This document shows, one piece after another, positions 119 through 63,460 of a stretch of DNA of 64,000 bases (positions are counted from its first letter, which is position 1; every line of letters starts with the position of its first letter). The translations under genes and the position numbers were made by a program. The DNA is from Takakia lepidozioides (Eukaryota; Plantae; Bryophyta), in contig CM060732.1 in the NCBI GenBank assembly GCA_030704615.1, positions 10,416,001-10,480,000 on the forward strand. Direction: 5' to 3'. The notes under the pieces are model-generated. The model did not search any database, was not told where the DNA came from, and saw nothing but the letters and a program-made list of their open reading frames with translations.

Positions 119-365
119 ATAACGGCTATGCTACGAGGGACAGACAACGAGGGTCACAACGGGACATACCGGGTAGTGATGGACGTACACTACCTGAGCC
201 ACAAGCAGAGACGGCTAAGTACGCGGTACTTAGCCAATGGCGGGACAAGGGTACATTACCACGAGAGCAGTAGTGGGTAGTGTAGTAACCGTGAGCCGTG
301 AACCACGATATCACACGGCCACCTTAGCATCGGCTTTAACCAATAGAGGGAGTAGTGGACCGTTT

Positions 366-38800: not shown

Positions 38801-40884
38801 ATCCAGAGGAGCACATTGACAGATGTCTGAGAGTCAAACCAATTCAGACTGTCTTGAGGGGTACAAATGATGAATTTACAGACCGCGAGCTGAATTTGAA
38901 GCCCTACACTCATGAGCTTCGCAGCTCTGCCTATGCGTACATCGCCTCTTCGTTTTGCACGGCAGGAATGGCGGCGGTCAATATTTTTGGAGGACCTGCA
39001 CTTTCTTGTCATCTCCATGTAAGTGCTAGTATCATTATAAATATATTCTGAGTTACAGTTTTTTTTATATCTCTTCACTTTATTTTTATATATTTGCTCT
39101 CTTTCACTTATCTCATTTTTGTTAGTTGATGACTTTGAAACAAGGTCCAAAGTCATTTTATAATTCCTGCGTAGGATGTTTAATATTTTTTCATTGTCTC
39201 TAGCTTGTATCTTTTGTCTGACACGGTTAATCATCATGTCACTAGGCTCTTCAAGTACGCGTTCTTGACTTCAACTCCCACGACCAAAAGGTGGTATGCA
39301 AACAGAAGGTAGAGGCAGAGTTTCGTCACTTAATGCTTCAAGAGAAAGGGAAAGGTCCAACCAAAGGCCAACATAGCACCGCTGGGAGTCAACATGGAGG
39401 GCGTGATCCACCACTGAACCCTATTATCCCTAGCACAATCAATCCCATAGTGGATGTTTCAGATTCCAGCGTGTCAGACGAAGACAATCAACATGGGACT
39501 AATAGTAAGGAACCACAAGACGATGTGGTCAGAAGAGTCTCACCTCAAATCACAGAAGGCAGTGCCACCCGAGGTCCAAGTACTGGTGGTATTGGTGATG
39601 GTACTAGTAGTCCTCATAACGAGGAAAATAACGAGAAATTATCGTCGTTTGAGAGGAATTTGAAACTTGGGTCTATGAATGTGATGCTGGATTACAATGC
39701 CACGGGTCATCAGGCCAATCTGGTGAATCTCGTAGATCCAATTGCGTCTGATGTGCAGGTCCCGGAAAATACCATGACAGAGTTTGTTGATGTCTTGGAT
39801 GTGGCTCTTCACAATGATGATGGTGATCGCCCACCAACAATGCAGTTTCTTGAGCCTGTCCCACATGCCATTCCGACTTATCGTGTCCAGTCAATAATGG
39901 GTGCGGTACTTGGGAGGGGTCTAATATCCCCACGTCCAGAGGAAACAAATGCCTTGGATTTGGAAAGGCTGAGCAAGATGATAGGGGTTTTGTTCCTGCA
40001 GCTAGTGATAGGCCTCTGGATTTTCAATCTCCCATCCCCACGAAGAGGCGTAGAGAAGGATCGTCTACTGGGAAAGTGAATGACGTACGTAACATCTTTG
40101 ATCAAGAAACACTGTGATTGGGTAGATGATGAGACATTGTTGAAAACCGTTGATATGAATGTCTGCAATAAATTTGAGTAATACATTCCTTGGTAAACTA
40201 TTTGATTACATGTTTGATATCCATATTTTGTAACTATTAATCTTCATGAATATAATTGTGTGTTCTAGGTTCAACTCTCAGAAACAAGGGAGATCACTAT
40301 GTCACAATCATCCTCAGAGTTACATCGGATAACTCAGACCCAAGTGGAAGTGACAAAGTCATGTTGTGATTACCAACGTTAGCCAATCAAGCTCCGACGC
40401 AGTCCTTAGCCCGTTGTCACTACAGACACACAACACTGGAGCAGCACATGCACTGGAGATGTTGTCACAGATCCAAGAGATGACACAAAAGAGGCTCCAG
40501 GAGCAGGGAATTCCCCCAGTCATTCCAAATCAACCTCAACAGTAGCAAATCAAGGAGACGAGCAATGAGCAGGGTGAAACATCTCCAAATCTGGTAAAGT
40601 GCTACTACACTATCTCTACAATTTTTCTAGATGTGTGGACTTCAAAACATGTTCCGAAGTATTGAATTCTCAAACACATAACAAAGCTAATTACATCTTA
40701 TGACCCAATGTAAGGGGCTGCTATTTCATGAGCGGCATGAGCATGAGCGGAAAAAAAAAAAAAACATGAGCAGACCATTGTAAGTCCACAGAAATAGGGT
40801 TAGGAGGCACGGAAATAGGGTCATGTGAAGTTGGAATGTGGCACCAGTGGACTTGAAATGCAACATTTTATTGTATTTACTTGC

Positions 40885-41979
40885 CGAAAATGGCTAAGTC
40901 CCAGATCTGACTAGTCCCGGAACTGGAAAAATGGCGCCGAATTTCCGATTTTGGTGCCAGTCACATCTGGGACTTAGCCATTTTAGGCCCCGAACTAGAA
41001 CAATGGCGGTTTTTTTTTTTTTTTTTCGGTGCCATTTTACCAGTTCGGGGCCTAAAATGGCTAAGTCCCAGATCTGACTGGGCCCGGAACTGGAAAAATG
41101 GCGCCGAATTTCCGATTTTGGTGCCAGCCACCCTAGGGACTTAGCCATTTTCGGCCCCAAACTGGAAAAATGGCGCCATTTTTCCAGTTCGGGGCCGAAA
41201 ATGGCTAAGTCCCAGATCTGATAGGGCGCGGAACTGGAAAAATGGTGTCGAATTTCCAGTTGCGGTTCCAGCCATCGTAGGGACTTAGCCATTTTCGGGG
41301 CCCGGAACTGGAAAAATGGCGCCATTTTTCCATTTCGGGGCCAAAAATGGCTAAGTCCCAGATCAGACTGGGCCCCGAACTGGAAAAATGGCGCCGAATT
41401 TCCGATTTTGGGTGCCAGCCAGATCTGGGACTTAGCCGTTTTCGGCCCCGAACTAGAAAAATGGCCGTTTTTTTTTTTTTTTTTCGGCGCCATTTTTCCA
41501 GTTCGGGGCCTAAAATGGCTAAGTCCCAAATCTGACTGGGCCCCGAACTGGAAAAATGGCGCCGAATTTCCGATTTTGGGTGCCAGTCAGATCTGGGACT
41601 TAGCCGTTTTCGACCCCGAACTGGAAAAATGGATTTTTATTTTTTATTTTTTTCGGCGCCATTTTTTCCAGTTCGGGGCCTAAAATGGCTAAGTCCCAGA
41701 TGTGACTGGGCCCAGAAATGGAAAAATGGCGCCGAATTTCCGATTTTGGGTGCCAGTCAGATCTGGGACTTAGCCGTTTTCGACCCCGAACTGGAAAAAT
41801 GGCGTTTTTTTTTTTTTTTTTTTTTTTTTTTCGGCGCCATTTTTCTAGTTCGGGCCGAAAATGGCTAAGTCCCAGATCTGACTGGGCCCAGAACTGGAAA
41901 AATGGCGCCGAATTTCCGATTTTGGGTGCCAGTCAGATCTGGGACTTAGCCGTTTTCGGCCCCGAACTGGAAAAATGGC

Positions 41980-42012
<33 letters not shown>

Positions 42013-42714
42013 TTTTTCCGGCGCCATTTTTCCATTTCGGGGCCGAAAATGGCTAAGTCCCAGATCTGACTGGCACCAAAATCGGAAATTCGGCGCCATT
42101 TTTCCAGTCATGCAGGTAATTCAAAGAGCGGATGGATGGAAATCCGGCGCCGGATTTCCATCCGCCAGGTAAGTCGGCGCGCAAAATTTCCGTCATGCAG
42201 GTAATTCGAAGAGCGGATGGATGAAAATCCGGCGCCGGATTTTCATCCATCCGCTCTTCGAATTACCTGCATGACTGGAAAAATGGCGCCGAATTTCCGA
42301 TTTTGGGTGCAAGTCAGATCTGGGACTTAGCCGTTTTCGGCCCTGAACTAGAAAAATGGCGTTTTTTTTTTTTTTTTTTTTTTTTTTGGCTCTTTTTCCA
42401 TTTCGTTGCCGAAAATGGCTAAGTCCCAGATCTGACTGGCACCAAAATCGGAAATTCGGCGCCATTTTTCCAGTCATGCAGGTAATTCAAAGAGCGGATG
42501 GATGGAAATCCGGCGCCGGATTTCCATCGGCCAGGTAAGTCGGCGCGCAAAATTTCCGTCATAAAGGTAATTCGAAGAGCGGATGGATGCCGGTTTTCAT
42601 CCATCCGCTCTTCGAATTACCTGCATGACTGGAAAAATGCCGCCGAATTTCCGATTTTGGGTGCCAGTCAGATCTGGGACTTAGCCGTTTTCGGCCCCGA
42701 ACTGGAAAAATGGC

Positions 42715-42751
<37 letters not shown>

Positions 42752-44440
42752 CCATTTCGGGGCCGAAAATGGCTAAGTCCCAGATCTGACTTGCACCAAA
42801 ATCGGAAATTCGGCGCCATTTTTCCAGTCATGCAGGTAATTCGAAGAGCAGATGGATGGAAATCCGGCGCCGGATTTCCATCCGCTAGCTAGGTCGGCGC
42901 GCAAAATTTCCGTCATGCAGGTAATTCGAATAGCGGATGGATGGAAATCCGGTTTCCATCCGCAAGGTTGGTCGGAGAGCGGATGGATGGAGATCCGGCA
43001 CCGGATTTCCATCCTGCAGGTAAGTGGAATCCCGGATGGATGGAAATCCGGCGCCGAATTTCCATCCTGCAGGTAATTCGAATCCCAGATGGATGGAAAT
43101 TCGGCGCCGGATTTCCATCCAGCAGGTAAGTGGAATCCCGGATGGATGGAAATTCGGCGCCGAATTTCCATCCTGCAGGTAATTCGAATCCCAGATGGAT
43201 GGAAATTCGGCGCCGGATTTCCATCCAGCAGGTAAGTGGAATCCCGGATGGATGGAAATTCGGCGCCGGATTTCCATCCTGGAGGTAATTCGAATCCCAG
43301 ATGGATGGAAATTCGGCGCCGCATTTCCATCCAGCAGGTAACTGGAATCCCGGATGGATCGAAATCTGGCGCCGAATTTCCATCCTGCAGGTACTTCCTC
43401 GCTGAGAATTACCTTCCTGCAGGTAATTCTCATCTCGGAATTACCTTCCTGCAGGTAATTCTGAGCGAGGAATTACCTTCCTACCTTCGTCGATAAGAAT
43501 TACCTGCAGGAAGGTAATTCTCAGCGATGAATTACCTGCAGGATGGAAATTCGGCGCCGGATATCCATACGCCAGCGATCCGACTTACCTGCTGGATGGA
43601 AATTCGGCGCCGAATTTCCATCCATCCGGGATTCGAATTACCTGCAGGATGGATATGCGGCGCCGGATTTCGATCGATATGGGATTTCACTTACCTGCTG
43701 GATGGAAATTTGGCGCCGGATTTCCATCCATCCGGGATTGCACTTGCCTGCTGGGTGGAAATTCGGCGCCGAATTTCCATCCGGGGGCTGGTGTCTGTCG
43801 CAGAGGTGCCGGCCTCTCCGCCGCTCTGTTGGATATTCGGTGCCGAATTTCCGTCCGGCGGTTGAAATATGACGGCCAGGTGCCGACCTCTCCCCCTCCC
43901 CGACCGCATTGGAACGGCCCCGGATTGAAATTCGGCGCCGTTTTCCTATCTGGGGAGGTTTTTATGTCGGCCAGTTTTCGGTCTGACACCCCGACAAGAC
44001 TTCCTTGGGGGGGCCCGGATGGAAATTCGGCGCCGAATCTCCATCCAGGGGATGCTGTCTGTCGAACACGTGCCGACCTCTACGCCCAAGGCGACTTCAT
44101 CCGGGCGTCCCCTGTTCGATATTCGGTGCCGAATTTCCGTCCGGGGGTTGAAATGTGACGGCCAAGTGCCGGCCTCTCCCCCCTCCCCGACTGCATCCGA
44201 ACCGCCCCGGATGGAAATTCGGCGCCGTTTTTCCATTTGGGGATGTTTTTATGCCGGCCAGTTTTCGGCCTGACCCCCCGACACGACTTCCTTTGGGGGG
44301 CCCGGATGGAAATTCGGCGCCGAATCTCCATCCAGGGGATGTTCTCTGTCGCACACGCGCCGGCCTCTGCGCCCGAGGCGACTTCATCCGGGCTTTCCCT
44401 GTTGGATATTGGGTGCCGAATTTCCATTCGGGGGTAGTAA
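40885..44440. repeat. 3.5-kb foldback and tandem array built on GGAAATTCGGCGCCGAATTTCC-type palindromes
   Basis: About 180-360-bp hairpin units with poly-T loops (40885-42960), 60-bp units (42985-43390) and their inverted counterpart (43530-43785), and ~300-bp tandem units (43770-44440). Perfect 30-bp palindrome at 43144-43173. Confidence 0.93.
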
Positions 44441-44730
44441 TGTGACGGCACGGTGCCGGCTTCTCCCCTTCAGCCGTCATCATCCGGATGGCCCCCCACT
44501 TTCTGACTGCATACCGTTGGCAGTTATTGCGCAAAGACCAGGGGCCGCATTCCGGAGACAAGGTTCATTAACACTCTGACTGTGGATTTTTGAGATAGTT
44601 GGCTCCCTACATTTGGATCAGGCTTCGTCGCTCGGACAAATCGGCATCGCATTCATTCCCATCGCTGCATCCCCTTCTACCAGGGAGCTTCCCCGCACTC
44701 CATCCTGGGAGTCTTGTGTGCACATCTCCC

Positions 44731-46817
44731 ATGGCGGAAAACTTGAGCACTACAGTGTACTGCCCTCCTCACGAGCATAGAGCTTCATTTCCGTGCAGAT
44801 GGGACACCTGCCGGGTGATGGAGAAATATCTGTGCGTTCGATACCACCTGAAACCGGGGTCGGTTCTTTTGGAGGAGGAAATGAAGGACTCTAACGGCCT
44901 TGTTGTCGAGAGTATTGTTGTGCTCCACGATGATTTCGGCGATGGCAGGGAATGGCGAGTTCCACCATTGGACAGCGTCATACACAGGGCTGTTGGGGAC
45001 TTCATTTGCCCGCCAAATGCACCTTCTATCCTGGCGCCTTCCACGAAACAATCCGCGAATCAGAGAGTGGCTACCTCAAAGAGAGAAGTCCGCAACGAAG
45101 TAAATCCAGAGCCGAACCCATCCATGAAGACGAGCAAGAACCGGGTTGTTCACAACCTGTCCGACTCAGACGAGGTCATGGAAGTTCCGAGGTCGTCCTG
45201 GAGATCAGGCAAGTCCTCAATGGACGTCAGTGGAGGAGGGAGTCATATTCCCAGCACGAGCACCGCAGTTCGATCTATTCTTGAAATTCTGCGAGGGCTT
45301 CACCTGGAGGGACACCGGTCGGAGCTGGCCGGGCTGGACTACAGCAAGTTCGCAATTAAATCGGTTACATGCCTTCCCGCCGACGTCGACGGTAATATCT
45401 TCTTTGAGTTCCCTCCTCGGGCGGACTACTCGAGGGCGTCCGGAATGTTGACAGATATGGATAGAAAACATGACGGTCATCCTTGGTGCGTTATCAAAAC
45501 CACCAGCATGAAGATGCTCGATGGTGTGCGGGTGCGCTACGTTGTTTGTGCGGGCGCGTTGCGGTGTTTCTCCCCAACTTGCTTCCACTTTAAATCCAGA
45601 GGTCACAGGAACGAGACCGATTGGACAGGCACAGCTCATCAACCATTTCGAGCTCAGGAGAAGGTTCCGAACTCCACATTTAAGTGTGCGCATTGCAAAG
45701 AACCACCACACTGCATGTCTGTTTGTAATGCCAAGCAGCTCTATGTGTTGCACCGTTTCCCTGACCTCACCCGAGCTTGCATACACGTTGGTTCCCATTG
45801 TCACAAATTGGCGAGGGGAACTCGCGGGAGGCTGCCCACGAAGCAGAGCAGCTCGTTCAGGAGGAGGTTAAGTTGAGACCGGGTGCCAAACCCAAACAGA
45901 TACAGCTCCAAGCCGCCCATAAGATGGCATTGGCCAGAATTATGTCGGAAGACGGCTCCGATAGAGTTCCTCTCGACGAGAAGGAAATGGAGGCATTGCT
46001 GGAGTCGGTGTCCCACGTATGTTCACCGAATGTCCGAAATCACATTGTCTCATGCAAACAGAAAATTGGGCGTGGCTCGGATATGCACTCCATTCTGGAG
46101 GTGAAGCGACGATGTGGATATGACTACATTCATGGAAGTAGGTTTCCAGGACAAGGGACTGAGGCAGATCGTTGTTTCGTATTCAAAATGTCCACGTGTG
46201 GACCTGGCAGCGGCGTCGAACTGGTCGACAGGATGACGAGTAGGAACTTGTCAAACAGTTGGGTCATGTTCGACCATATCAAGCGAATTACAAATCACCA
46301 GTGGGTGACAATGGGTGCACATGTCTACGACACCCACTGCAGGATGCTAATGACAATTGCTATTTGTGAGATGAAAAGAGAGGACACACAATCGGAGATG
46401 CTTCTTTGGCAGGGAATAAACGAACAGATGGCCAAGGCGGGATTGCCCCCTCCGAATTTCCGTGGTTTCATGGCGGACAACGCACAAGCAAATTGGGCTG
46501 CCATCCGAAGGGTGTACGGGCAAGACCCCAATGTTCCCATGGAAGGCAAGGAGAGATCTTGTGGGTTCCATTTTCTGCAGAGCCTTTCGCAGTACACAAC
46601 CAGGCTCGTGGCGCCAGATTTCAGAGAGGAGCACCGTTCCATGTGCCTTGCGTGGAAGCGCGCTCCTACCTTGGATGATGCAGAGACACAGTTTGCATGC
46701 ATACGGGCTTGGTGGACATCGTCAGGTGCTGTAAGGAAATCAGATGAGGGAGCAATGGTCAGTTGGCTAGCATGGTGGCATTATCATTTCCTCCAGTTCG
46801 GCGACTATATGCGGGAG
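44731..46817 (+). pseudogene. MULE transposase exon 1 (frameshift at about 45815; exon 2 deleted)
   Basis: Nearly identical to 4633-2546, but has G4 where copy 1 has G5. After the donor GTGAG the sequence jumps to the subterminal region, losing the catalytic E and SWIM. Confidence 0.92.
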
Positions 46818-47542
46818 GTGAGTTGCACGTCCGAACATGCTAAGTCCGAACTGGCTAAGTCCGAACATGCACTGGAAAAATGGCGCCGAATTACCTATCA
46901 TGAGGGGACCTATAGCCGCGGAATTCGGCACCATTTTTCGCCAGAGAGACCTATTACCGCGAAATACGTCGCCGTTTTTCAGGTTACGGACCCTATTACC
47001 GCGAAATTCGGCGCCATATTTGCACATGTCGCTGGGAATTGGCATGAGCGGAAGACGAAATATCATGAGCACAACTGTCAAAACTGCAATTTTCCCTTCA
47101 AGGGGCCGAATAATATATTTGTTTTTCCTGACACATTGCATTAAATTATTGTTTTTTATTGTTTTTTATTTTCGAAATTTGTACTTCTGCTCATGAAAAC
47201 CGATTGTCTTACTACTCCGCTCATGCCGCTCATGCTCATGAAATAGCAAACCTCCAATGTAATACATACACTTATGGATAACTCTTTAGTGTCATCTTTT
47301 ATCCACTCTTGATATAGAAGTGAGATCCAAAACTATAACCCCTTTGTCCATTGGCCCCAATGAGTCAAGAACATTATATTATGTTGTGGTTCTTTGATTT
47401 CGGAGCCAGAACCATGTGTGTATATGTACGGTATAAATAATTGTGCTTAGTTGCCTTCGTATTATTGAATGGTTATTACAATAATTGTGCATCTTCTTGC
47501 TAACTCGTTTGTTTCGGGGTTGCAACTCTCTGATTTCACCAG

Positions 47543-48027
47543 AATGAGCCTCAACGACCTCTTGGCGAGATACAGAGTGTCCAAAAATGAATGTTGATTA
47601 TATTTGACCTGAACGGTGTGCTTTGTCGCACAGAGAGAATTGAGGAGGGTATTGTTGTGAAGGAACATTCCAGTGCAAGCAAACATTTCAAACAGCCCTT
47701 AGTTATTGGCAAGAAATTGGTCTACCGACGTGAACGTTATGATCAAGTCTGGCGTTCATTAAGTGGTTCATTTGATCTAGCTATCTGGAGTTGCATGATG
47801 CTCCGAAACCTCATGCCTATTGTTAAGAGACTTTTTGAAGGTCTGCCACAACCTGTTTTTGTTATGACTCAGAACGACTGCATAGTCTGCCCCCCAAATA
47901 CTGATCCTCAGTACAAGGCAAGACAAAATCAAACAGATCATCCATCTATGTTCCTTAAGCCTCTTAGGATAGTGTGGGAGAAGTACCCAGGTCGATATGA
48001 TGAGGTCAATACTCTCATTGTTGATGA
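47543..48027 (+). pseudogene. FCP1/NIF-family HAD phosphatase exon (DLNG type), 3'-truncated
   Basis: QK*MLIIFDLNGVLC...VYRR...FDLAIWSCMM..NL...FLKPLRIVW...YDEVNTLIVD. The frame is cut at the final HAD motif by LINE sequence. Confidence 0.82.
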
Positions 48028-48029
48028 GT

Positions 48030-51000
48030 TGGTTAGGTTCGATAGCGGCGAGGAGTGTTACACCGGGTGGGAATTGTAGGAGGGGGTGGGGACTGTTGGG
48101 TAGCTTTTGGTGAGTGAGTAAAAGGATCGTGACGCTTGATGGGGAGGATTGTGTGGCCATACGGGCCCATTGGAGGGCCTCATGTGTGAGGGGGCCTGAA
48201 GGGGGGTTGGCAAATCCCTTCCCTGCCCATGCGTGTTGGGTGGCATGTCCGGTGGCTCCGAAGATGGAGTCCCGGGGGTGGGGGCTGGCAAAAGTTGTGA
48301 TTTCCATCGGGCACGTAAGCGGACTGGAATAATATGAATGAGTGAGTCCAAAAGTGGTAATGAGCAGAGAGAGGATATCCTGGGGGATGGTAGTATGAGC
48401 AAATGCTTATGTTAGTTTTGTCAGGGAACGGGGTTTTTTGGGAGGAGTGTCTTGGAGGTAGCGGGTAGCAAGCCAACTGAGTTTGGTAGCGAAGTCTTGT
48501 CGGGGGTGGGTGGATTTGAGCGTCACAGGGGAGGAAGTAGAGTATTTAGCCCATAGCCAAGCTAGTCTGTCATTGGGAATGAGGCCAAAAAAACGGCCGT
48601 TGAAGGTGTAGATAGTTGACATGTGAGGGCCGTGACAGATTGTGGGGGAGGTGTGCAGGATATCCTTATCTGGATTGCATTCAGTAATGTGTATGTGTAC
48701 GTTGGGGGCGGTAAGTGGTTGATGTACGTGTCGAGCATCTTTGGGTTGGGTTTGGGAGATATGTTGTTGGTGGGTATGTGCGAGGTAGTTAGTGTCGGTA
48801 CGTTTGTGGAATGCGGTGAGGAGTGTGAGATTGTGGGCGGGGTTGCAGTCGTCATGTGAGCCAAAGAGGTCATCCTCGATTTGCCATGAGTTATCATCAG
48901 CTGTGTAGCCGGCCCATTGGCATAGGTAATAGGTATCAATACAAGTGGCCCCATATGAGTCTGTGGAAGTTTGGGTTTTAGTACCTAGGATGGCTTCGAT
49001 AACATATGCTTCGGGGTTATCTGTGTGGTCATGATGAGTTGCAGGAGTGCCAGGTGAGGTGGGAGCTGGGGTGGAAGTAGTTTGCGTAAGAATGGCGTGT
49101 GGATGCAGGCGGGGGGGGGGGGGTCTAGGACAAGTCCCTATCCAAGTGGGGAGAGGGTATGGGGGAGGTGGATGTGGATGGGGTGTCTCTAGTTTCAAGT
49201 GTTCCTGCGGTTTGGGAGGCCTTAAGCGTGTGGAGAATAGAGGGGGATGGGCCTGATCTGTAGGCAGGTAGTAAGTCGCGTTGGGTATGAGGAAAGAGTG
49301 AGCATGGGAGATCGCATTCAAGGGTACATGATGCGGATGGGTGGCAGAGTAGAGTATGTAGGTGTTGGAGGAACCTGCATGTTTTGGCTGTGGCACGAGA
49401 ATGTTTAAGTGTGAATGCTCCCGGGGTTATAAGTTGAGTCCCTGTGACGGTGGTAAGTTGGGTGAGATGAGTGATATGCCGTTCTTTGAAATAGGTGAGG
49501 AGGGAACGCTTTTGGCGGGGATGAAGGCGTTCAAAATGGGAGAGGGAGGGTCTGGTATTTAGGGCGTGTTCCAGCTGTGGTATCATGTTATGATAGCCGG
49601 GTATGTCGGTTTGGATGTTGATACGCATTTGTCGTAGGATGAGTAGTGTACGTGCCGTGGGGGAGTGTAGGCAAGATTGGGAATGAAGAGATGGGAGGGC
49701 TTGTAGTCCATTGAATTTGTGGGCTAGGAATTTAAGAAGTCCGCCGTAAATAAGTCCTAGGCGTCCAGGGTCATTGAGTGCTTCTTGTAGCTGGGTACCA
49801 AGGGTTCGGGCATATGAAATAATCAGGGGGCTGGAGCCGACGCCGTAATAGTCTGTCGGGAGTTGGGTGAGGGCACTAGGAGTACTGGTAGGTAAGCCAC
49901 ATATTCGCTTGGTTAGTCGAGTGATGTGTTTGTCAAAGGAGCGACGTGAAAAGAGTATTGGACTTGTGGCTTAAGCACAAAGCTGATGATTGATAGTTTG
50001 GGTCTAATGGAGACAGGGGATTTAAGAAGAGCCAGGCTTTTGTTAGAGAGCTTAGCAAGTGAGGTGGTCTTTTGCACATGCCAGGTGAGTGATGGGACTA
50101 GCTGGATACCTAAGTATGTGTAAGGCTCATCGGGTCCCAAAAATGGGAAGGAGTTGTTTAGGTAATGGATGTAAAGTTTACAATGAGAAGCCATCGCAGT
50201 TTTTGTTAATTTACTGCGGTGGGTTGTTGCGGTAATGGCGCACTTGTGGAGGCTAAGTTCCATGCCAGACCATAAGTTAAAGCGGGATAACTTGCTGACT
50301 TGCCGGTTGAGGTGTTGGGGTTTGTGAGCTAGACTACCGAGGTCGTCAGCGTATGTGGCGGTGGAGATTTCATTGAGGGGGGTTTTATAGTGATAACCAA
50401 GATTCCCGCGTGCTAACCATCTTAGTAGAGGTTCTAAAAAGATAATAAAGAGGTATGGACTGAGGGTATCACCCTAGATGGTACCGCGTAGGATAGGAAT
50501 AGGGGGGGTGGTACCATAGTATGAACCGGAGTATTCCGTAGTGCTGTTGGTATAGATGTTGCCAATGTGTTGGATGGCATCGATGAGATAACCGAGGTCC
50601 GTCATGATGGCAAGTAGTCTAGCATGGTCTAAGGATCCGAAGGTATTTTAAAGTCTATATACAAGAGATAGATATATTGTTTAGTGAGCTTGGCATCTTC
50701 AAGGGCTGAGAGGACGTATTGTATTTGACGAGTTGTGCTACGTGTGGCTCGGAAGCCCTCCTGGGGGTCACTCGGAATATGGTGTTGTTCACCGTAATTG
50801 GATAGCAGCGTGGTCAGTGTGCTGGTAAACAATTTATAGATAGTATTGGCTAGGGCTATGGGTGTGTAGTTACCGAGGTTAGTTGGGTCGCCTTTCTTAA
50901 ATAGCAGGATGGTGCGGCTGTGTTTCCAAGTAGGTGGGATACGTTTGAGTTGGTAGCATAGCTTAAAAAATTTAAAGAAGAGGGTATGAAGATGGGGGTC

Positions 51001-51885
51001 GAGCGCCTGTAAGATAGCGTTAGGGATCATATCTGGTCCAGGGGCCTTTGATTTGGATAGTCCTTTAAGGCAGGAGTCATAGAGATCTAGCGTGAAAATA
51101 TCATGTATGCGGTCTATGGGTACCCCACGTTTGTCTAATGAGAAGCCGTCTAGGTCATGCCATGGGTAATGTTTGACTTTACATAAACAGTTGGGGTGGT
51201 GGTGGTCAGGGTGTGGCAGTTTGCGACAACGGGCGTATAGGAAGCGGATGCTTGGATCCATATTTCTTTGTTGATATCAGTGGGGCTTGTCAAGAAGTGG
51301 CCCAGTCGATGTTTAAGGCAGTCGATTGGTGGATTGAGCGTAGGGTTAAAGATGGCTTTGTGTGCTCTTTTAGGATGGTCATGTAGGAGCTGGCCAAAGG
51401 AGGTAATAAACTTTTTGTGGTTATCGCTAGCTTTTTGTTTGGTTATAAGATATGCGGCTTTCTTTGCGTCCCTTCCTAGCTTGGCGAGGGCAGCAACCCA
51501 GTTCAGGATGGTACTGTGGTCCATAGGAGGGGGCGAGAGGGCTTGGCATACTGGGAGAGAGTTTAGGCAAATAATGCGGGGGTCTCGTCTCCATTCTGTG
51601 TGATGATTGTTGGATGGGGAATTGGGGATGATAGTAAGGGCACGGCGTATGGTATGATGGGTGTTAAGGTGAGAGGTCCGGGCGCGTTTTTGTGAGCGGG
51701 TAAGGTATCCTCTATTTGTTTGGATCGGGTAGTCTGGGGGAGGTCCTGAGGGGCCGAACAAGTTGCCAACACGCTTTTGGTCATTTCTTGGAGGAGGGTT
51801 GTGAGGGTACGCTCGGCCTCGAACCAAGAATCCTCAAGGGATTGCGTCGTATTTGTGTCGGAAAGGGTGTAGGAGAGTTCTCGCT
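48030..51885 (-). mobile_element. LINE ORF2 3' part: RT, chromodomain and PCIF1-like methyltransferase (Dualen/RandI-like lineage suspected)
   Basis: KAPGPDMIPN, PIALANTIYKL, QEGFR, LLYIDF, GDTLSPYLF and YADD (50342-50353). Chromodomain at 48863-49009. YSSPLT...DSIFGA.G...W.GKGFANPP at about 48195-48335. Confidence 0.85.
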
Positions 51886-51887
51886 GC

Positions 51888-54800
51888 CAACATCCTGACA
51901 GCTACGCTTAACGCTACCATGCCACTCCCAGGGTTCCAATCCCCCCACTACCCACCATCTTCCTTCGCCACCACACCAGGTGTATCCCACCCCCAATCTG
52001 CATCTTCACCTACTACACCTCGCTGCCACACTCCAAACACCCCCGATCTACAGTCAGACTCCTTTAACATCACCACTTGGAATGTCGGATCCCTTGCCAC
52101 CAGTATCCAGAGTCTGATCCACCTCCTCACGGACTCCACTCCCCCACACATTATTCTCATCCAAGAAAACTCCTCTTCAAACCAATCTCAGTTTACTCTA
52201 AGCCTACTACACAGGTCTGGTCAGGGTTCATTAAGGTTGAGCTGCTACACCCGGAGGTGGATGGGCTGGCTTTGCTCCGCGGCGACAGGCCTTTCGTCCT
52301 CGAGATGGAGCCTGAGGTCATGCTACAAGGGAAAGGTGAAAAAGCATAGGACCTGCTTGCAACATCCGAGCGGCTTTCCCTCTACTTTACCGACGACATC
52401 CTGCAAGGAACGGTGGGTACCCAACTCGCAATGCACTTTATCACAGAGACTTTCGACCACGGCGACAACTTTGAAATCCACATCTACAAGCCCAACCCCG
52501 AAACTAAATTTGGCTTCATCAATCTAGCAACAGAGGATACGAGCACCCGGATCATGGACTTGGGAGTCAGGATTGATAACGTCCTCATTAAGCCCGAGGT
52601 GCGTATCCAAAAGAAAAGCAGATCCGGGGCAAAGATATCAGACCAAGAAGCCATAGCAATGTGCGATGCCCTCACCATCGTCGTCAAAAATGTAAGCTTG
52701 ATCCACACGCAGGCTGACATCCTGGGAGAACTGTATAGTCTGATTGGCCAAAGCAACATCACTCATTTCTATTTCTGTAAGATGCTCCCTCCCAAAACTG
52801 TGAAGCTCATTGGAATGCTTCATATAACGTGCAAAAATCCTACAATCTACGCCAAGTGGTGCGGAGTGCCCAATATCACCATGCATGGCAGGTATCTCAC
52901 CTTCTCACCCCACCGCCAGAGTCTCCAAGGCATCACGCCACCCTCACAGGTGCTACTGGATAAAATGCTAGTGGACAACATCAACCATGCCCTACTAGAC
53001 ACGGTGGAAACCATTGCAATCCAGCCCGCCCAAAAGCACTCTACCGGACCTGCAGATTGGATGGCCGAAATTGACAAGCGACTAGCTGCACACTCAATTT
53101 CTATCAAGACTGATCTACGCAACGATATCGCCGGCATAGAGACCCGCCTAGTAGAGTCCATTACACAACAACAGACTGAGTACCATACCTACATGGTCTC
53201 CCTTCACCAGTCCATCACTGAAAATCTTGGGCACAATCTAGCTAATTTTTATCATCATGCAGATCTGGTACTTGCAAAATTACCTCAGCTTCCAGGACCC
53301 AGCTCTTCAAGCGACCTGTGCCACACACCAATGACGGGAGCCACGGCAGTACACCTTGGCAACCGACCACCAGTCCAACCTTTTCTCCATGCGGCTCCAG
53401 AGCTCAATGCAGCGTTGCTTCGCCGGGCCTCACAAGTGCGCGCCACTACTGCTGCTGTAGCTTAGGAATAGTTTGATGAATCACTCCTCGGATACATCAC
53501 CAGCGTCCAGCCCACCTCTCTATCTCTCACTGAGTTCCCACCAAATGCTTATGTCTAGTTTCCAACACTCTAGCTCCTCTCGCTCCCTTCCTAATAGTTG
53601 CCTCCCGGCTTCCTGCCTTATGTTACCAGTAGCTCTGTGCTCATCGTGATCTCTCTGCACTATCTGTTACTCTTGTGTACCCCACGGGGCCCTCGCCCTT
53701 CTGCTTCAACCAAGACTCTACTTTTGCGTTATGACTGCACTGCCTCTCTACTCACTTCTCCACACGCTTCTCAACTTGGTTCCAACCCGACTCTACACTC
53801 TTACCTCACCACCCTGTTTCACTGAAGTCCCAACACCCACTCAGGCTGTCCTACTCACAGCCCAAAACTCCCGCTGATCCCTCGATGTCAGCCTGCACGG
53901 GCCCAATATCTGTACTCTTGGCATGACGCCACGTGGCGGCGCACGGAGCCCGCTCCAGCCACCTATCCAGTGCCCGGCACTCCATACCCCCTCACTTTTC
54001 AATTTGAATCATTCACCGAGCAAGTACTTAAGTTATCCGAAAAATCTATCATTTCCAGATTCTATCCCAACGGCTCTAGCTGATCTTATCCCCACCAACA
54101 CATGACATCTGCCCAATCCCACTCCGGGCCCCACGCCTCTTTTCCATACATGCAAATATACCACTGTCGAATAAAAGTCGTCCATCCCACCCAGCGTATA
54201 ATATACGTCCTCTATATAAATCTTAATTCTCATCCAACACTCAATAGTCTACCCCATCATCAATCCATCCTAACCTATACCCTTAGCCACGCCTGAATAA
54301 ACCCCCCACTTATATCAGTGTGCTTCCATTCACACCTACCCCCATAAGGCATACCAACTACACTCCCACACTTCCCCCAGTCCCTAGCCCCATGTTACCT
54401 TCCACTTATACCCGTTGCCTGTCACACCCTCAACCCTCAAGTACGCCACCCACCTTAATAATCTTCCCCATAGCATCCGCCCCTCAACCCCGCCAGCCTA
54501 TTTATATATCACGCACTCATACCATACTTTTTCTCAAACATCTACTATACAGCCCCTGATACTGCACCAGATTTGCAATACCCTCCCCACCAACCCACGA
54601 GACTTATCCACCCCCCACTATTCCCTACCACACCCATGGTGGGAAGGCCACAACCTTATCAATAAGCCCTAACTGGTCACAACCTTATCATTGGAACCAC
54701 CCCAAATATAAACTCACCGCACCTCTATACACATGGACACCTATGCTAACCTATGCCCATATTACCGACACCACTGTCTCCGCTCAATCAACCCGCCAAC

Positions 54801-55764
54801 CGCTCCAAATTTTCCCAATAATCTCCCCACCAAATTACTATGTCATCACTCAGCATACTTATACTTCATCCCAACTGTCATATACAACTCTCATCATTGA
54901 CAAGATACTAGGCCCAACCTATTTCCACTACCCACTATACATCTCCCCTCCCTGCGCCTGGCACACCAGCCCCACCCTAGCTTCTAACAACCATAGCCCC
55001 TTAACTTCACCGTACATCAATCCATCCTACCCTCATAAATTACCCTCTGAACTACCCAGAAAAACCCTCTCATTACTCACAGCCCAAACGGGCGCTCTCT
55101 CTACCACCCCCTAAAATCCAAACACAGCCTCCATCACCCCCCTTCACATGAAACTTATACCTCAACTTACGTATCACACTTACACTGCTCCGATGTGGGG
55201 ACATCCACCCTAACCCCGGGCCACTCACTATTTCCACCATCACGACTCAACTCCCTGCTGATGCACAAGATCGCTATACTTCCAGCCGGACACCCTATCC
55301 TTTATACACCAATACAAACATCTTGCTACCCACTTCGCCCCCTACCTCCCCAAATCACTACCCATCCCCTCCACTCACCTACAAACTGTCCCCCACTACA
55401 TTTCCACCTTTGGCCTCCCAGCCTGCCCATACCCTGCTCTCTCCCACACCCCCCACAAACTTCAAGCCTTTCCACCATACCACCTCCTCTTCTCCCTGAT
55501 TGTCCTCATCTCCCCTTTGCCCCAAGAATGTAATGACTACCTTACGTCCCAACCAGATTCCCAACTCATTTCCCTACTACATCACTTACAAGACCTACCC
55601 ACGCATACCAGCAACTACTTAGCCCCACCACATTGCTTGACTGATCTCCATGCGTCCCTAAACCTGTTACAATCACATCCCGGAGTTATACACAAAATGC
55701 TTGGTGATCATCTAGCGTTTGCACCCACCACTGTCCCAGACATCCCCACTACCATCAACAAATT
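51888..55764 (+). mobile_element. Inverted LINE pieces: APE N-terminus (to about 52167), ORF1 with RRM-like regions and coiled coil (to 53465), then a C-rich spacer
   Basis: NITTWNVGSL...HIILIQE; KFGFINL (RNP1-like), LTIVVKNVS and LRNDIAGIETRLVESITQQQ. Base skew flips at both ends. Confidence 0.7.
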
Positions 55765-58700
55765 CCCGTTTTGGGTAAGGAGTGAGGCTTGAGGTTGGAA
55801 GTGTTTTAGAAATGTGGTGATATTATGTTGGGGTAAAGGTGAGAGGAGACGGGGTTGTGGGTCTTGGGCCTGGATAGGTGGGATGGGAGGGATGGTGGGA
55901 GAGAGACAGATACTGGGTAATGGTCTGAGTTGCATATGCTATTGATATGAATATGGCTTGTAAGGTATGCGGGAATATCATTGGGTGACTTAAGATGGAA
56001 ACCATCTATAAGGCTTAGAGATGAGTAATTAAGGCCGCCTTGCCTCGAATAGTGATAGTCTGAAGGTATGTATCTGAGATGATGGTTATGTATGAAACGG
56101 GCCCAATCTTGGTCAAGAGGGGATGAGGGTTTGTGGACTCTGTTATATGTGTGGCCCGATAGAGCAATGTCCCGGTTGAAGTCGCTAGCCAGTATATAGT
56201 GGTGATGTTGGTGCGCGGGGTGCTTGATTGTGTTAGAGATTGTGTCCAAGATGTCGGGTATCAGGGATAGGTCCTCAGTATGGGATGACATATATAAGTG
56301 GATGAGAGTGATGGGCGTAAGTGCAGGGAGATGCAGCTGGACAATTTGAAGGTGAGATCGGAGAGGGATGGGTACTAGAACTTTGGTGGTGGTGCTGGAA
56401 GAGTGATGGGTGCGGAGGATGCCAAGTGCCACACCACCCCGCGTAGGACAGTATGGGGCGGAGCGACGGTAGAGACATTGTGTGGCTGTCATGGGGGTCC
56501 CATAGAGGAGGTAGTAGGCTGGTAAGAGTTTGTTAATATAGGAGCTGTTGGTGTTGTTTAGTTTAGCGTTGGGTCGCCCTGGCATGAATCACGTCCTTAT
56601 GCAATTCGACATTGGAATCAAAACGAATCATGATATGATAGGGGTTAGCAGGGGGACCAGTATCCTTGTTGATGATTGTACCTGTGGGTAGCTGCGTGAG
56701 ATGAAGAAACTGACCGTCGATACCATCAGGCCGGGTGGATGGGTACAATCTCTGAGGTACTCGTGGAAAGGCTTTTTTGCAATGAATGAGTTCCTCACAC
56801 TCGGAGGGGGGGATGCCCAAGAGAAGCAGCTGCTCCATAGTGCGGGGCTCGGTGATCCGTGGGGCGTTGTTCTCGTAAGCATACATTTCCATGTTCTGAT
56901 ACCCATACCACAGGTGAAAGGCCTTTTTTTGGCTGGTGACTTCCATTTGCTGCTGCTCGTGCTCTTCGCTGTGCTGATTACGAGATTTTTTCGAGTCCGA
57001 GGGAGCTGCCTACACTAACCTCCTGCGAGGGACGCTTGGGGCGTTGGCTTGATGATGTAGGAGTTGCCTTGATCTGGGAATAGGTGTGAGCCTCTAGTAG
57101 CGCGTCCGAGACATCTAACATATGGTGATCGCTGTGTTGAAGCTGACTTGAGGAATTGGTGCTGGGTGGCTTGGGTGGTGCTGGGGAAGAACTGTGGACT
57201 GCTGCGGTGGTGGAGTGCGTGCCAGGAGTAGGCGAGCAAGTCAAATCGATGGGTGTACCTGAATTCGCCACAAACAGTTTCTTCTTGGATGCCATGTTTT
57301 TGGGTCTGGCCTTGGGGGATGTAGAGAAAATTGGGAGAGAGGTCATGGGTGCAGGAAGTGGAGAAATACGGCGATAATGGGCTGTTACGAGTGAGGCTAA
57401 AGTACCCTGAGAGACAGCCCGGAGATATGAGAGGGGGGCAGAGGGGGGAGCAAAGAGCAGAGACGATAGATGTGAAGCCCAAGAGAGCCAGCCGCAAGTG
57501 CAAGACTGATGGAGGAGGCCAGTATTTGTGGCGTTTGGGGTCTGAAGGCAAGTTGGCGGATTTGCTGGCTTGGAGTAAAGCGTTGGCGGCTTGGGGTTGT
57601 CATGAGCGATCAATTCAGGGATGGGGGGGAGAGCCCGGGGATTAATTTTGGCTGCAAATTTACTTAGGGGCTGGCAAAAGGCATGGTGACCAAGTATGGG
57701 GATAGTGTAAGGCATGGCTGTCATACTAGCAGCAGTGGAGGCGATGGTCTGGTGAGAGGGCTGGCCGTGGGAATCAGAAATATGGCAGCATGCTGTCCAG
57801 TGAGAAGCAGCGTGAAGGGGGGCAGGGGCAGATTTTGTCTGGGCCAAGTTATACCAAGTGGGGGGGGAGCTAATTGTGGGGAGCCTGATGCAGCCAGAGC
57901 ATTGAGGAAGGGTGTTTATATGACCATTCATGATGCGTGTTTGTGGACTTGTGTGGGTGGGGCAGTAGTGATGGGAAGTGATGGTAGATCTGTAGAAGAT
58001 TAGGGCTGAGTGAAGAGGGGATGGTGTGTTGTCAAGAAGATTATGCAGGATCCAGTCTGAGAGTAAGGGTGGTGGGTGATGAGTTAGCAGATGGCAACGG
58101 GGAATTTGTGAAGGGTATGTATAGTGTGAGTGTGGATTGTGGGTAATTGTGAAGATGTATATTGGATTGTATGGTTTAACGGAGCTGGACGAGTGGTAGG
58201 GAGAAGTCCAGATTGTGTTGCGTGCACCTTGTGGGGATTGTTTATAGTAAGGGTGGTAAGTTAGTGTGGTTAGTACAATAGAGGGTTGGTATTGCCCTGG
58301 GTGTGAGTATGGAGGTTTGGGGATTGGGTGTTTGTTAATGTATGAAGGATAGGTGGGGGGTGGGTAGGGGTAAGTGTAGGTATTTGTGTGGAGTGGTATG
58401 AGGGAGTGGGCTGGGGACATGGGGAACCATGTCCGTGGGATATGTGGGCATAAAGGTGCATATCGAGTAAACATAGTGACGATGTGAGTAGACATAGTGA
58501 TAATGCGCCGGGGGTGTGATGATGCTAAGATCTGGTTGTGCATGGATTTTGGAGTATTGGTGGGCAGATGTGGGGTAACATATACTTGTGGCAGTTGGAG
58601 AAATAGGGGGAGGTGAAGGGATGGAACGGCAGGTATAGTGTCTAGACCAGAGCTGTGGATGTAGGACCATTCAAAGTATGGGGAAACCCAGTCAAGTATA

Positions 58701-60950
58701 GTGGTGTGGTGGGCGCCAGCCTGACCAATAGTCTGATTGGCATAACAAGCAAGTTGTAGAGTAGTGGGGGCCTCACAAAGTACTGAGTGTGGCATGTACC
58801 CCACTGACTTCTGACTAGGTATTGGTGATGTAGATGGATGGTAGAGACACCATGAAGATGCTGTATGTTGAGAGACACAGGAAAGGTAAGGTGGCAGTTG
58901 CTTGTGATGACAAGTGCCCAGTATGGTGAGGGCAGCCTGTTGGTGCAGGGGCAGGTCGTAGGAGACGTCTTGGCGGAGGGGGACCAGCCCCATGTCTGAC
59001 TGTGAGCTCGGAGGGCAGTGGCCACGCTTGTACGGATGGGTGCTGTCGGGTCTTGGGAGGGAGAACCACTATTAAGGGCCACCCCGGTTGTCAACCCGCC
59101 ACTGTGTACTATACGAGTAAAAAAGAATGTGTGAGTCTGGGTGAGTATGGATTGGATATACAAAAAGTAGTGGGGCAGTAGAGAAGATGGATTAGCGGGT
59201 AGCAGGGGTGGTAGTGGACAAGCAGAGATCTGGCAAGCTCTTACTCTAGTGGGTAGTAGCACGGGTGGGGGAGATGAGATTGGGTGAGGAGTAATAGATC
59301 GGGGGGCAACAAACAGTGGCAAGCGGCAGTGCTGAGGGGGAGGTACATGAGAAGTATAAGGATCAAGAGGGGTTGTGAGGACATAACCGGGGGGAGGCAT
59401 TCAGCAGAGGGTGAGATTTGGGTGTGGTAATCTTCAGCACAAGGGGTGTGGCACAGTCAGGTTGGGAATAAATCTGATAGAGGGCCCTGTGAATAATGAA
59501 CCGAGTGTTGTACAGCAAAGAAGTATTGGGGTAGTACGCATATTGGTATAGAGTATTGGTGTAGTGAACATGGGTGGACCAAGGGGGGTAGAGTACCTGT
59601 GTGGAGCTGGTGAAGCATTGGGTACCTGCGGAGTATAGAAGAGCCAGAGAAGGATGTTGGGTACAAAACATGCTGAATTGAGTGTTGCAATAAGAAGGTA
59701 GGAGGGGGGGGGGGGGGGTAGAGGTCTGTTGTGCACTTGGAGATCACAAAGAGCAGCAGGGGTTGAGTGTGGGCCTGATAGCAGTGCGTTTGAGCTGGCA
59801 GAGATGTGGCTATTGTGGCACTGAAACCAAGCAGGAGTTGGGAGGCCGGAGAAGACATCTGAGTGGTGTGGGGCCAAATGCGTTGGGTACCTGCTGAATC
59901 TGCTGAGCCCACCCCAGCAGGCAACATAGTTAGTGGTGTGGAAGGGATACGAATTGTGTAGTATTGGGGAAAACACCTTTGTATCAATTAAAAGAAATAA
60001 AGTGAATTGAGTATGGAGTGCCAGCATGGGCGTAATGAGGGGGGTGGGGGGGCAGCTCCACCTGTTGTTACTCTGATTCCAATACGTATTGATCCTGTCT
60101 AGAGTACGTTGGGTGGTTTGTGGGGGTAGAAACACATTATCTTGGGATGAGGGATCTGTAGCGAGAGGATGGGTATATAACCGATGACATAGATGGGGAT
60201 CAGTCTTGGGGGCAGGTGACCATGCAGAACTAGGCCGGCTATGGATTATTGGTTTAGGGAGGAGTTGAACACAAACATCCATAACCGTGGTGCCTGCCGG
60301 TAGAGATAGGGGCTATGGCAATAGTGGAGCTAAGCCTGCTAGAAGCAGAGATCGTGAGAGAGTACCAGAAGGTTAAGGCACTTACCTTGAGGGAGTTCGA
60401 GCCATTTCGTCCAGGGCCAGCCGCACTGGCGTAGCATAACCATGCTCTGGCAGGACCCCATAAAGGAAGGAGACAGTATGGGGCCAGTGCAAAATAAAAA
60501 TTATAACACGGGTGGTGGGAAGATTCAAGGTAGAGATACTTACAATAGTGGGGGCAGAGTGATGAGTAGTGAGCAACAAGGGAGAAAAGCGGATCGTGTC
60601 TACCTGGGGTTGCTTACAGGGGAGCCCATTTGAGGTGACGAGTTTGCGCCCTGACGAGGAAGTCCACTTGTGCACTACAAACCTTGGAAAGGGCCCTGTT
60701 GCCCTGAGAGAGATATGGGTACTGGTAGAAAGGGGGGTACCTGTTCCATGTGGTACATGTGGGGTTGTACATAGGTCGAGGAGGTTAGGAACGCTCCGTG
60801 TAGAGCCATAATGTGGAAGATGGGTGTTGATGTAACTGAATGAGAGCCTGCACTAGAAGCATTCGTGTCTTTTCCGAATCGACTGGGTGTCCGCCAACCA
60901 CTCCGGGAACCACTTGGCAGTAAGCGGGACTACTGGAGAGTCGAAACGGA
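55765..60950 (-). mobile_element. LINE 5' part: probable 5' UTR and ORF1 start, long C-rich region, ORF2 N-terminus and APE C-terminal half
   Basis: RGGVALGI, LIHLYM, ILASDFN, SLIDGF and NSDHYPV (55806-56585). Uniform sense-strand C richness. 5' limit is approximate. Confidence 0.65.
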
Positions 60951-61200: not shown

Positions 61201-61329
61201 CGCATTGATTGCACCCGAGATTCGGGGCCACATTTGCTGACGTGTGTTTCACAAGAACAGGTAAAGAAAATGTGGCCTTGGGGGAATAGATATTTTAATA
61301 TGTACTACCTCCACCTGGAAGTGACATGG

Positions 61330-63460
61330 AAGGTCCATGGTCCAGCTTGTAGGGTTTGTCGTTCTGAACACCGCCCTGGTGGACATGTATGCTGAATGCA
61401 GGAGCATTGAAGATGCGAAGGTAGTGTTCGACTGTGGCTCAACGAGATGTGGTGTCGTGGAGTGCGATGATCGCATTGGCAACAATGCAAGGATGTATGC
61501 ATGATTTGTGCAGAGGCAGTGATAGTTGAAAGAGCAGGATAGAGTGTGGGTCCAAGAGGGTCGGATTTCAAGCTCCAGATTACCTATGGATCCCTGTGGA
61601 AGGATAGCTACAAGAAACCTCCATGGGTACATGGTTAGCTGGAAGCGGCAGTTGTAGCGGCACAGTTGATAAAATCAGGCACCTCAACCATGACCACAGC
61701 TTCTGGAAGAGGATAAAGAGAGGGAGTCCACAATGCCTCTTCTGGCACTTATGGGCATGTGAAGATGCTTTATGAGGCAGGCAGACTGAAAGAGGCTCTA
61801 CAGATTTTAAAATAGAGGCATTTCAGCAGATGTAGATACGTATGTGTGTCTCTTGCATAAGTGCATCAAGATGAAAGGCCTAGAAGTTGGAAAGCAGGTG
61901 CACACTCACATTGTCCAAAGTGGATTCACGCCGAACGTTTTTCTACTCAACAACCTTGTCAACATGTATGTTAAGGGGAGCATCATGGATGATCACCAAA
62001 TGTTCAACACAGAATGCCTCAACGACCTGTGAGCAAATGCGCGAAGGGGTGAAGCCCAACCACATCGTGTTTGTATGTGTTTGCAATGCATGTGCAAGCC
62101 TGGAAAAGGGGAACGAGGTCCATGGTGACATCGGTCAAAGCTGGAATTGCACCGGATGTCATTCTGAACACTGCCCTGACCTGGACATGTATGCCAAATG
62201 TGGATGCATTGAGGATACAAAAGGAGTTTTCGACACTATGGCTAAATGAGATGTGGTGTTGTGGAGTGCGATGCTTGCAGGGTATGCACAACAGGGACGT
62301 GGGATGGAGGCTTTGGAGACCTATGATCCAATGATGGGGGAGGGGGTGAAGCCCGGCCACTTTGTGTGCATTTGCAATGCTTGTGCAAGCCTGGCAGCCC
62401 TGGACAAGGGCAAAGAGGTGCATGGGGATATCATCAAAGCTGGAATTGTACCAAATGTCATTCTGAACACTGCCCTGGCAGCTCTGGAAAAGGGGAAAGA
62501 GGTCCATGGCGACATCTTCAGAGCTGGAATTGTACCAAATGTCAGTCTGAACCATACCCTGGTGGACATGTATGCGAAATGTGGTGCATCGAGCCTGGAC
62601 GAGGGCAAAGAGGTGCATGGGGTATCATCAAAGCTGGAATTGTACCAAATGTCATTATGAACACTGCCCTGGCGGCTCTGGAAAAAGGGGAAAGAGGTCC
62701 ATGGCGACATCTTCAGAGATAGAATTGTACCAAATGTCATTCTGAACCATATCCTGGTGGACATGTATGCAAAATGTGGGTGCATTGAGCCCTGGACAAG
62801 GGCGAAGCGGTGCATGGGGTATCATCAAAGTGGAATTGTACCAAATGTCATTATGAACACTGCCCTAGCAGCTCTGGAAAAGGGGAAAGACGTCCATGGC
62901 GACATCTTCAGAGCTGGAATTGTACCAAATGTCATTCTAAACCATACCTTGGTGGACATGTTTGCAAAATGTGGGTGCAAAGGGATCTAGGATCTAGGAT
63001 GCAAAGGGAGTGTTCGACACTATGGCTGAACGAGATGTGGTGTCGTGGAGTGCGATGCTTGCAAGGTATGCACGGCAGGGACGTGGGATGGAGGCTTTGG
63101 AGACCTATGAGCAAAGGATGGGGGAAGCACATCATGTTTGTGTGCATTTGCAATGCTCGTGCAAGCCTGGCAGCCCTGGAGACGGGCAAGAAGTGCATGG
63201 GGCTATCCTCAAAGCTGGAATTGTGCCAAATGTCAATCTGAACACTGCCCTAGCAGCTTTGGAATAGGGGAAAGAGGTCCATGGCGACATCTTCAGAGTT
63301 GGAATTGTACCAGATGTCATTCTGAACAATACCCTGGTGAACATGTTTGCAAAATGCGGGTGCATCTAGGATGCAAAGGTAGCTTTGGAGAGCTATGAGC
63401 AAATGATGGGGGAAGCACATCATGTTTGTGTGCATTTGCAATGCTTGTGCAAGCCTGGTA
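61330..63460 (+). pseudogene. PLS-class PPR pseudogene with internal tandem duplications, cut by a MULE
   Basis: Repeated AALEKGKEVHGDIFRAGIVPNVILN..LVDMYAKCG and RDVVSWSAMLA.YA.QGRGMEAL, with frameshifts. Confidence 0.88.

Follow-up and report, generated by a model that had tools for sequence, protein, structure and literature searches.

The 64,000-nucleotide stretch of the Takakia lepidozioides contig CM060732.1 analysed here (the window) contains, mainly on its minus strand, a dead land-plant LINE of the Dualen/RandI type, which is decayed, rearranged and 3'-truncated. The middle of its ORF2 carries a chromodomain followed by a module with the fold of the PCIF1/CAPAM methyltransferases, and we hold both the Dualen identity and the fold to be practically certain. 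The element is apparently an undescribed variant of the Dualen clade, and the motifs of its plant PCIF1-like domain make a pseudo-enzyme the best reading, comparable to the inactive PCIF1-clade domain found in DIRS1. The features of the copy are collected in Table 1.

Table 1. Parts of the Dualen/RandI-type LINE copy, in positions of the window.
Feature	Position	Strand	Evidence or remark
3' break	48026..48028	.	contigs from both sides continue into other sequence
Rossmann-type PCIF1/CAPAM-like core, 3' end cut	48029..48406	-	motifs RD..FG, W.G
Strand-4 motif	48197..48208	-	NPPS in the window copy; no aromatic fourth residue
YSSPLT (equivalent of FASPLN)	48331-48314	-	in the PCIF1-like core
In-frame TAA	48407..48409	-	in a loop equivalent to the CAPAM active-site loop; private to the window copy
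N-terminal lobe of the PCIF1-like module	48410..48700	-	small sheet and two helices; profile alignments to 6irv/6irx
Chromodomain	48860..49006	-	closing helix to about 48790
RT thumb and following region	49227..49931	-	tblastn of L014, 36%; contains stops
RT	49937..51213	-	Pfam RVT_1; one frameshift near 50645, and stops
APE-to-RT linker	51213..51890	-	tblastn of L014, 35%; homology shown to 51743, remainder by eye
AP endonuclease (APE), N-terminal piece, inverted	52075..52167	+	45% over 31 aa to L014 APE residues 43-73
ORF1 second part, inverted	52173..53465	+	tblastn of L014, E 4e-14 and 2e-10; homology shown to 53078
2A-like peptide ending NPGP, inverted	55185..55223	+	precedes the APE in the intact relative
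APE, main part	55815..56546	-	36% over 247 aa to L014 APE residues 82-321, E 7e-43
ORF1 first part	56617..57006	-	tblastn of L014, E 2e-15
C-rich leader, probable 5' region of the element	57007..60900	-	GC skew (strand bias only)

Identity and relatives of the window copy

Dualen/RandI elements are defined by an APE and an RLE within one LINE (PMC5029228, PMC9977147). RNase H, CCHC and RLE are absent from the window copy, which is 3'-truncated at 48027, and neither RNase H nor RLE gave a match anywhere in the window. The assignment to Dualen/RandI, which an earlier note on this DNA had suspected, is upheld by the APE pieces, by the placement of the RT and by the domain order of the relatives, the nearest of which carry RNase H, CCHC and RLE.

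A near-complete plant-type element with a separate ORF1, L014, could be mapped along window positions 57006-48104, which covered ORF1, the 2A-like peptide, the APE, the RT, the chromodomain and the PCIF1-like domain. The pieces are scrambled, with part of ORF1, the 2A-like peptide and the start of the APE on the plus strand at about 51900-55790. Two overlapping inversions would explain the order found between 51890 and 56600, each piece being kept once; alternatively, this order could be an assembly error rather than the product of real inversions. A nested second LINE at 51900-55790 was rejected as the source of the plus-strand APE, ORF1 and 2A-like pieces, since the L014 mapping assigned them to the same element and no piece was duplicated. 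A 2A-like ribosome-skipping peptide 5' of the APE was also detected in L014, near 5200, and has been reported for Dualens (10.64898/2026.06.17.732966).

In the window copy, a stop and a frameshift near 49130-49095 split the RT from the chromodomain, which are parts of one ORF in the relatives; in reading broken frames, an X was set at each break. The chromodomain and PCIF1-like blocks share one minus-strand frame (49021-48030) with a single TAA, as the earlier note had described, and its claim that both domains belong to a LINE ORF2 also stands, as they lie in one ORF in the relatives. The PCIF1-like domain, however, starts about 300 nt before the TAA, so that the stop lies inside it. This TAA was missing from every covering sister contig among the public contigs of the same species (11, 14 and 3 contigs in three runs). 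None of the RNA runs contained this region, which has no bearing on its expression. At its 3' end the LINE abuts an unrelated repeat with a NIF/FCP1-like phosphatase ORF (47591-48027, plus strand, Pfam E 0.001), which is cut at the junction; as the copy ends there, the final 250 nt of the open frame lie outside the element.

Several other features were observed in the window. A solitary fragment resembling the Dualen APE lies at 6650-6953 on the minus strand, with 69% DNA identity to 55945-56255. A transposon-like element is present as two inverted copies, 94-97% identical (44400-47250 and 360-4950), with a 455-aa ORF without Pfam matches, and 40800-44500 is occupied by satellite-like arrays, in part in inverted orientation, whose units measure about 53, 170-190 and 290-360 nt. 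PPR genes or fragments were found at 5260-5840, 17000-19230 and 61300-63400, one of them with an E motif that by itself points to a land-plant host; the plant-type relative L013 adjoins a DYW-type PPR gene.

The RT was placed in a tree that held no named Repbase references, had one true outgroup only and left the backbone unresolved, and in which the window RT grouped with L005, L013 and L014 at 100/99, far from the window's other LINE. L014 carries both APE and RLE, and the window RT is thus placed with that of a dual-endonuclease element. The outgroup was the second, distant LINE of the window, with a zinc-knuckle ORF and an RT at 24546-27601 on the plus strand; the L005 RT, tried as an L1 outgroup, was rejected, being a plant-type Dualen RT. 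In L005 (3100-11915), and also in L006-L009, the 3' part of a plant-type Dualen (PCIF1-like domain, RNase H and RLE) and a plant-type Dualen APE-RT are joined tail to tail. The two may form a single element whose 3' half is inverted, and inversions may be common in this clade.

A length-limited homolog search with a piece of the window gave one match, and an unrestricted HMMER search with a 132-residue core query returned 176 proteins. In the relatives the order is APE, RT, chromodomain or PHD finger, PCIF1-like domain, RNase H, CCHC and RLE, a layout supported by P0140, P0134, P0164, P0198, P0185 and the plant-type L014, with the APE found as Pfam Exo_endo_phos. P0140 combines an APE-like start, RT, PCIF1-like domain and RNase H in a single ORF, P0164 has in addition an APE and a PHD finger, and P0198 and P0185 carry a Josephin and an OTU protease, respectively. 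The RNase H between RT and RLE, a region at which the window copy is truncated, was matched by Pfam RNase_H with E 1e-14 in P0004, P0005 and P0151. All the long relatives end in a CCHC and RLE-type region, and so do P0151, P0005 and L014, the plant-type relatives nearest to the window copy. At their C-termini the RLE of these three reads E-F-T, that of several others E-x-G and that of many relatives E-x-K; judging from these residues, RLE activity may be variable among Dualens.

A PCIF1-like domain was present in all 42 proteins of at least 1500 residues, a set that includes near-duplicates and was found by queries containing this domain. It looks, from this distribution, like a core part of the Dualen clade; it occurs across the retrieved Dualen-like proteins and is not special to land plants, and the Atlas cluster nearest to the relatives is mostly from Chlorophyta. 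A captured host gene fragment, or a chance juxtaposition at this locus, would be in line with the rearranged and truncated state of the locus and with a single-sequence Pfam score below cut-off, but the same order is found in one ORF on unrelated contigs (P0002, P0208 and L014), P0002, with chromodomain and PCIF1-like domain in a single ORF, sharing 46% identity with the window in a 303-residue alignment. Many sister copies exist as well, and we take this explanation to be refuted by the relatives, with hardly any probability left to it.

The chromodomain and the PCIF1-like module

The first block matched the Pfam chromodomain profile PF00385 with E 4.3e-6 and 27 bits, above the cut-off of 25.1, and its best PDB sequence matches were all chromodomains. 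In the relative L002, the corresponding part of the AlphaFold model matched the Rhino chromodomain (Z 8.0, rmsd 1.8). The chromodomain proposed in the earlier note was thereby confirmed, and the three cage aromatics that it had listed, Y (49006), W (48916) and Y (48907), are all present in the window. The Y-W-Y cage is likewise intact in L002; two sister loose ends read W-x-G-F, and in 12 of the 14 aligned plant-type copies P, L or H stands at the third cage position, so that the cage is lost. Therefore, methyl-lysine reading is not essential clade-wide. For the window lineage, in which the cage is intact, chromatin targeting by the chromodomain would be plausible.

Among the non-plant relatives, weak Pfam chromodomain matches were obtained in 3 of 18 (best E 0.056) with no PDB match, and none of these relatives matched the profile of the plant chromodomain. 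At the chromodomain position they have a pair of W-containing strands, in some cases with a PHD finger inserted between the two, and such fingers are clear in 3-4 of these relatives. In P0164 (2321-2368), P0194, P0190 and P0198 the finger lies between the two W-containing strands, just 5' of the PCIF1-like domain. A reader slot at this place seems to be general, with variable content.

For the second block, the PDB sequence search returned PCIF1, and the core in the window matched PF12237, which despite its name aligns to the PCIF1 methyltransferase core, with E 1.4e-4, below cut-off. Human and zebrafish PCIF1 were matched by profiles of the family over about 200-245 positions (E 2e-13 to 3e-11) and were the only natural proteins to give a significant match. 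When aligned to the family HMM made from the relatives, the window peptide scored 244 bits, whereas none of 300 shuffled versions exceeded 7.8. The structural model is that of the relative L002, which is 46% identical to the window sequence (pLDDT 88). It matched CAPAM with a Foldseek E of 1e-10 and a VIA Z of 17.8 (231 residues, rmsd 4.0); the second-best methyltransferase reached 7.9. A model of the NPEY type, with pLDDT 93, matched PCIF1 with E 8e-14 and TM 0.68. Both folds named in the earlier note, chromodomain and PCIF1 methyltransferase, were thus recovered by profile and structure, the latter in the model of L002. Phage Dam, ranked first in an Atlas feature search, was rejected as nearest kin, as the profile and structure searches favour PCIF1.

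The N-terminal lobe of the module matches the last ~55 residues of the CAPAM helical domain (human about 424-478), and is also backed by conserved columns and by the structural alignment from model residue 125. The PCIF1 match starts at about human residue 424, and no WW domain was matched in the window. The helical domain of CAPAM forms half of the cap pocket (PMC8287941), and as most of it is missing from the module, cap-specific binding is not supported.

Catalytic motif and possible role of the module

The strand-4 motif of these enzymes has the consensus [DNSH]PP[YFW], in which the target base is stacked by the aromatic residue (PMC4738411). Mutating motif positions 1 and 4 together leaves PCIF1 inactive (bioRxiv 10.1101/485862). 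The NPPS that the earlier note had taken as the catalytic motif is indeed present in the window copy and does not fit this consensus, but its N is a nearly private substitution in the window's decayed copy: at position 1 (48208) the sister copies read His in 100% of the depth in two runs and in 94% in the third. In 76 plant-type domains, near-duplicates included, N came first in 1 and H in 52, an aromatic residue was fourth in 8, and the full HPPY, which fits the consensus, was found in 4; the fourth position varies (D, N, T, H) and the second proline is frequently lost. The 106 other relatives, counted in the same way with near-duplicates, included 15 with NPEY and 4 with HPPF. Almost always lacking the stacking aromatic, and in view of the inactive PCIF1 mutants, the plant-type domain is therefore most likely catalytically dead, and it is very probable that no methyl transfer takes place in the window's lineage. 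The proposal that the element N6-methylates its RNA, its cDNA or the target DNA is accordingly not supported for a family whose motif is H-P-P-x without the stacking aromatic.

The core motifs are nevertheless conserved, with P, D and F at >=90% across 120 sequences. To judge from its codons, the PCIF1-like domain is under purifying selection, with a dN/dS of ~0.26 (dN 0.11, dS 0.42) in L014/L012, the sole unsaturated pair; in the other pairs dS was near-saturated and dN was 0.47-0.74.

To a binding role of the PCIF1-fold module combined with targeting by the chromodomain we give about even chances. The module would have descended from an active adenine-N6 methyltransferase, of which NPEY survives in scattered branches, and would now be a non-catalytic nucleic-acid-binding domain that holds the element RNA, the target DNA or the RNA-cDNA hybrid beside RT, RNase H and RLE while target-primed reverse transcription proceeds. 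A chromodomain with an intact cage would bind a methylated H3 lysine and bias insertion to heterochromatin, as in chromoviruses, the whole acting as reader plus binder and not as reader plus writer. It counts against chromatin targeting that the window copy is surrounded by PPR genes and other repeats, and against a dead enzyme that the motif tolerates His in its first position and that 4 plant-type domains read HPPY.

That the plant-family domain is an active N6-adenine (or N4-cytosine) methyltransferase, with the chromodomain as reader and the module as writer of a mark on the element RNA, cDNA or target, appears improbable to us. The Rossmann core is complete, with SPL, D..FG and W.G conserved at 75-91%, and the prevailing His does fit the consensus, also in the HPPY of 4/76 plant-type domains; yet motif position 4 is free to vary, the second proline is often lost, the N of the window is private and FASPLN has drifted to YSSPLT.

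A structural scaffold, a SAM sensor or a protein-docking domain (e.g. a PCIF1 mimic), instead of a nucleic-acid binder, is a possibility that we consider rather unlikely. The best-kept residues (S-P-L, D, F-G) surround the cofactor side, by analogy with PCIF1, and mimicry was given by Iyer et al. as an alternative for DIRS1 (PMC4738411), but a WW domain for docking to RNA polymerase II is missing and domains that handle nucleic acids flank the module in every full-length protein. We think it equally improbable as an active plant writer that the module is a plant vestige, retained for no other reason than that large deletions would disrupt the polyprotein: the loss of the catalytic motif, the loss of the chromodomain cage in many copies and a moderate dN/dS of 0.26 would suit such a vestige, but motif columns are near-invariant over RT distances of ~2 changes per site, no long relative lacks the module (42/42, in a biased search) and the model has a pLDDT of 88.

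The preferred binding role concerns the plant-type module, and the distant Dualens that keep NPEY or HPPF are candidate active enzymes. On the RT tree, with its unresolved backbone, N-x-x-Y takes 4 changes for 5 proteins, which would fit an intact ancestral motif that was lost repeatedly. HW.TP, FASPLN and NPEY motifs were observed in the Dualen-like P0184, P0189, P0190, P0192, P0196, P0197 and P0106; NPEY proteins of this kind resemble active Dam/PCIF1-type enzymes and are the best candidates for a retrotransposon adenine methyltransferase that is active. A wider reading, put forward tentatively and with limited confidence, is that Dualens ancestrally encode an active PCIF1-related adenine-N6 methyltransferase beside a histone reader (chromodomain or PHD finger), which would be functional in the NPEY/HPPF branches and would place on the RNA, the cDNA or the new insertion of the element a mark that protects or licenses it, whereas land-plant Dualens would have kept the reader while the writer became a binder. 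If so, a retrotransposon-encoded adenine methyltransferase would exist and could be a source of 6mA in green algae. Full-length ORFs that could be tested include NPEY (P0184, P0192, P0196), HPPF (P0140, P0178) and dead-type motifs and, as an active Dualen is known in Chlamydomonas (PMC9977147), the role of the module is genetically testable.

Comparison with known elements

The relatives of the window element resemble described Dualen/RandI elements in having APE and RLE in one element, and their RT, RNase H and CCHC follow each other as in those elements. An N-terminal cysteine protease (Josephin, OTU or C48) is variable in the clade, and relatives found here carry Josephin or OTU. In the cited passages of PMC5029228, PMC9977147 and PMC8226300, which give the Dualen/RandI descriptions (Kojima and Fujiwara 2005), the domains are SET, peptidase, APE, RT, RNase H, CCHC and RLE, and the reported hosts are green algae and cryptophytes. 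These descriptions, as far as the passages go, name neither a PCIF1-like domain nor a chromodomain nor a land-plant host. The plant-type L014 further differs in its separate ORF1, its RLE reading E-F-T and the absence of a visible protease, with no Pfam match to one in the scanned L014 ORFs. The literature search found no paper on a Dualen with PCIF1 or a chromodomain, nor on a land-plant Dualen, so that in the searchable literature the chromodomain-methyltransferase pair is, as the earlier note had supposed, apparently undescribed for a land-plant LINE; an annotation in Repbase/Dfam is possible. An apparently undescribed core domain is thus added to one of the oldest LINE clades, which is extended to land plants.

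Cellular PCIF1/CAPAM shares with the Dualen module the whole methyltransferase domain and the end of the helical domain, at 16-20% identity and, for the NPEY-type model, TM 0.68-0.75. It has a WW domain and the full helical domain, whereas the module has no WW domain and lacks most of the helical one, and the NPPF of PCIF1 is replaced by HPxx in plant Dualens and by NPEY/HPPF in some others. Failing on the catalytic motif and on the WW domain, the window module is not a PCIF1, despite its PCIF1-like fold.

Chromoviruses offer a parallel for the other domain, as their integrases have an HP1-type chromodomain within an integration protein, and exist, too, in cage-intact and cage-lost forms. They are Gypsy LTR elements with a C-terminal chromodomain, whereas here it is internal in a LINE ORF2, where a targeting device known mainly from LTR chromoviruses is found. 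The precedent for such targeting is Gao et al. 2008, as cited in the passage of PMC6673714 referred to here.

DIRS1 is similar in that a PCIF1-clade fold lies in a retroelement polyprotein beside RT and RNase H; its domains were judged inactive and a binding of template RNA was proposed for them (PMC4738411). It belongs, however, to a different retrotransposon order, with a tyrosine recombinase, and some Dualens keep a catalytic-type motif. Neither a tyrosine recombinase nor terminal repeats, which are DIRS1 traits, were among the Pfam matches of the window or of the relatives, where APE and RLE were found instead. The Dualen model had a TM of 0.75 to chordate PCIF1 compared to 0.49-0.51 to RT-associated Atlas clusters, which may be DIRS, and this model comparison hints that the Dualen domain was captured separately from that of DIRS1. 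A PCIF1-fold module is thus found in a second retrotransposon order besides that of DIRS1, and here too it is mostly dead, which points to a repeated use of the PCIF1 fold in retrotransposons for non-catalytic purposes.
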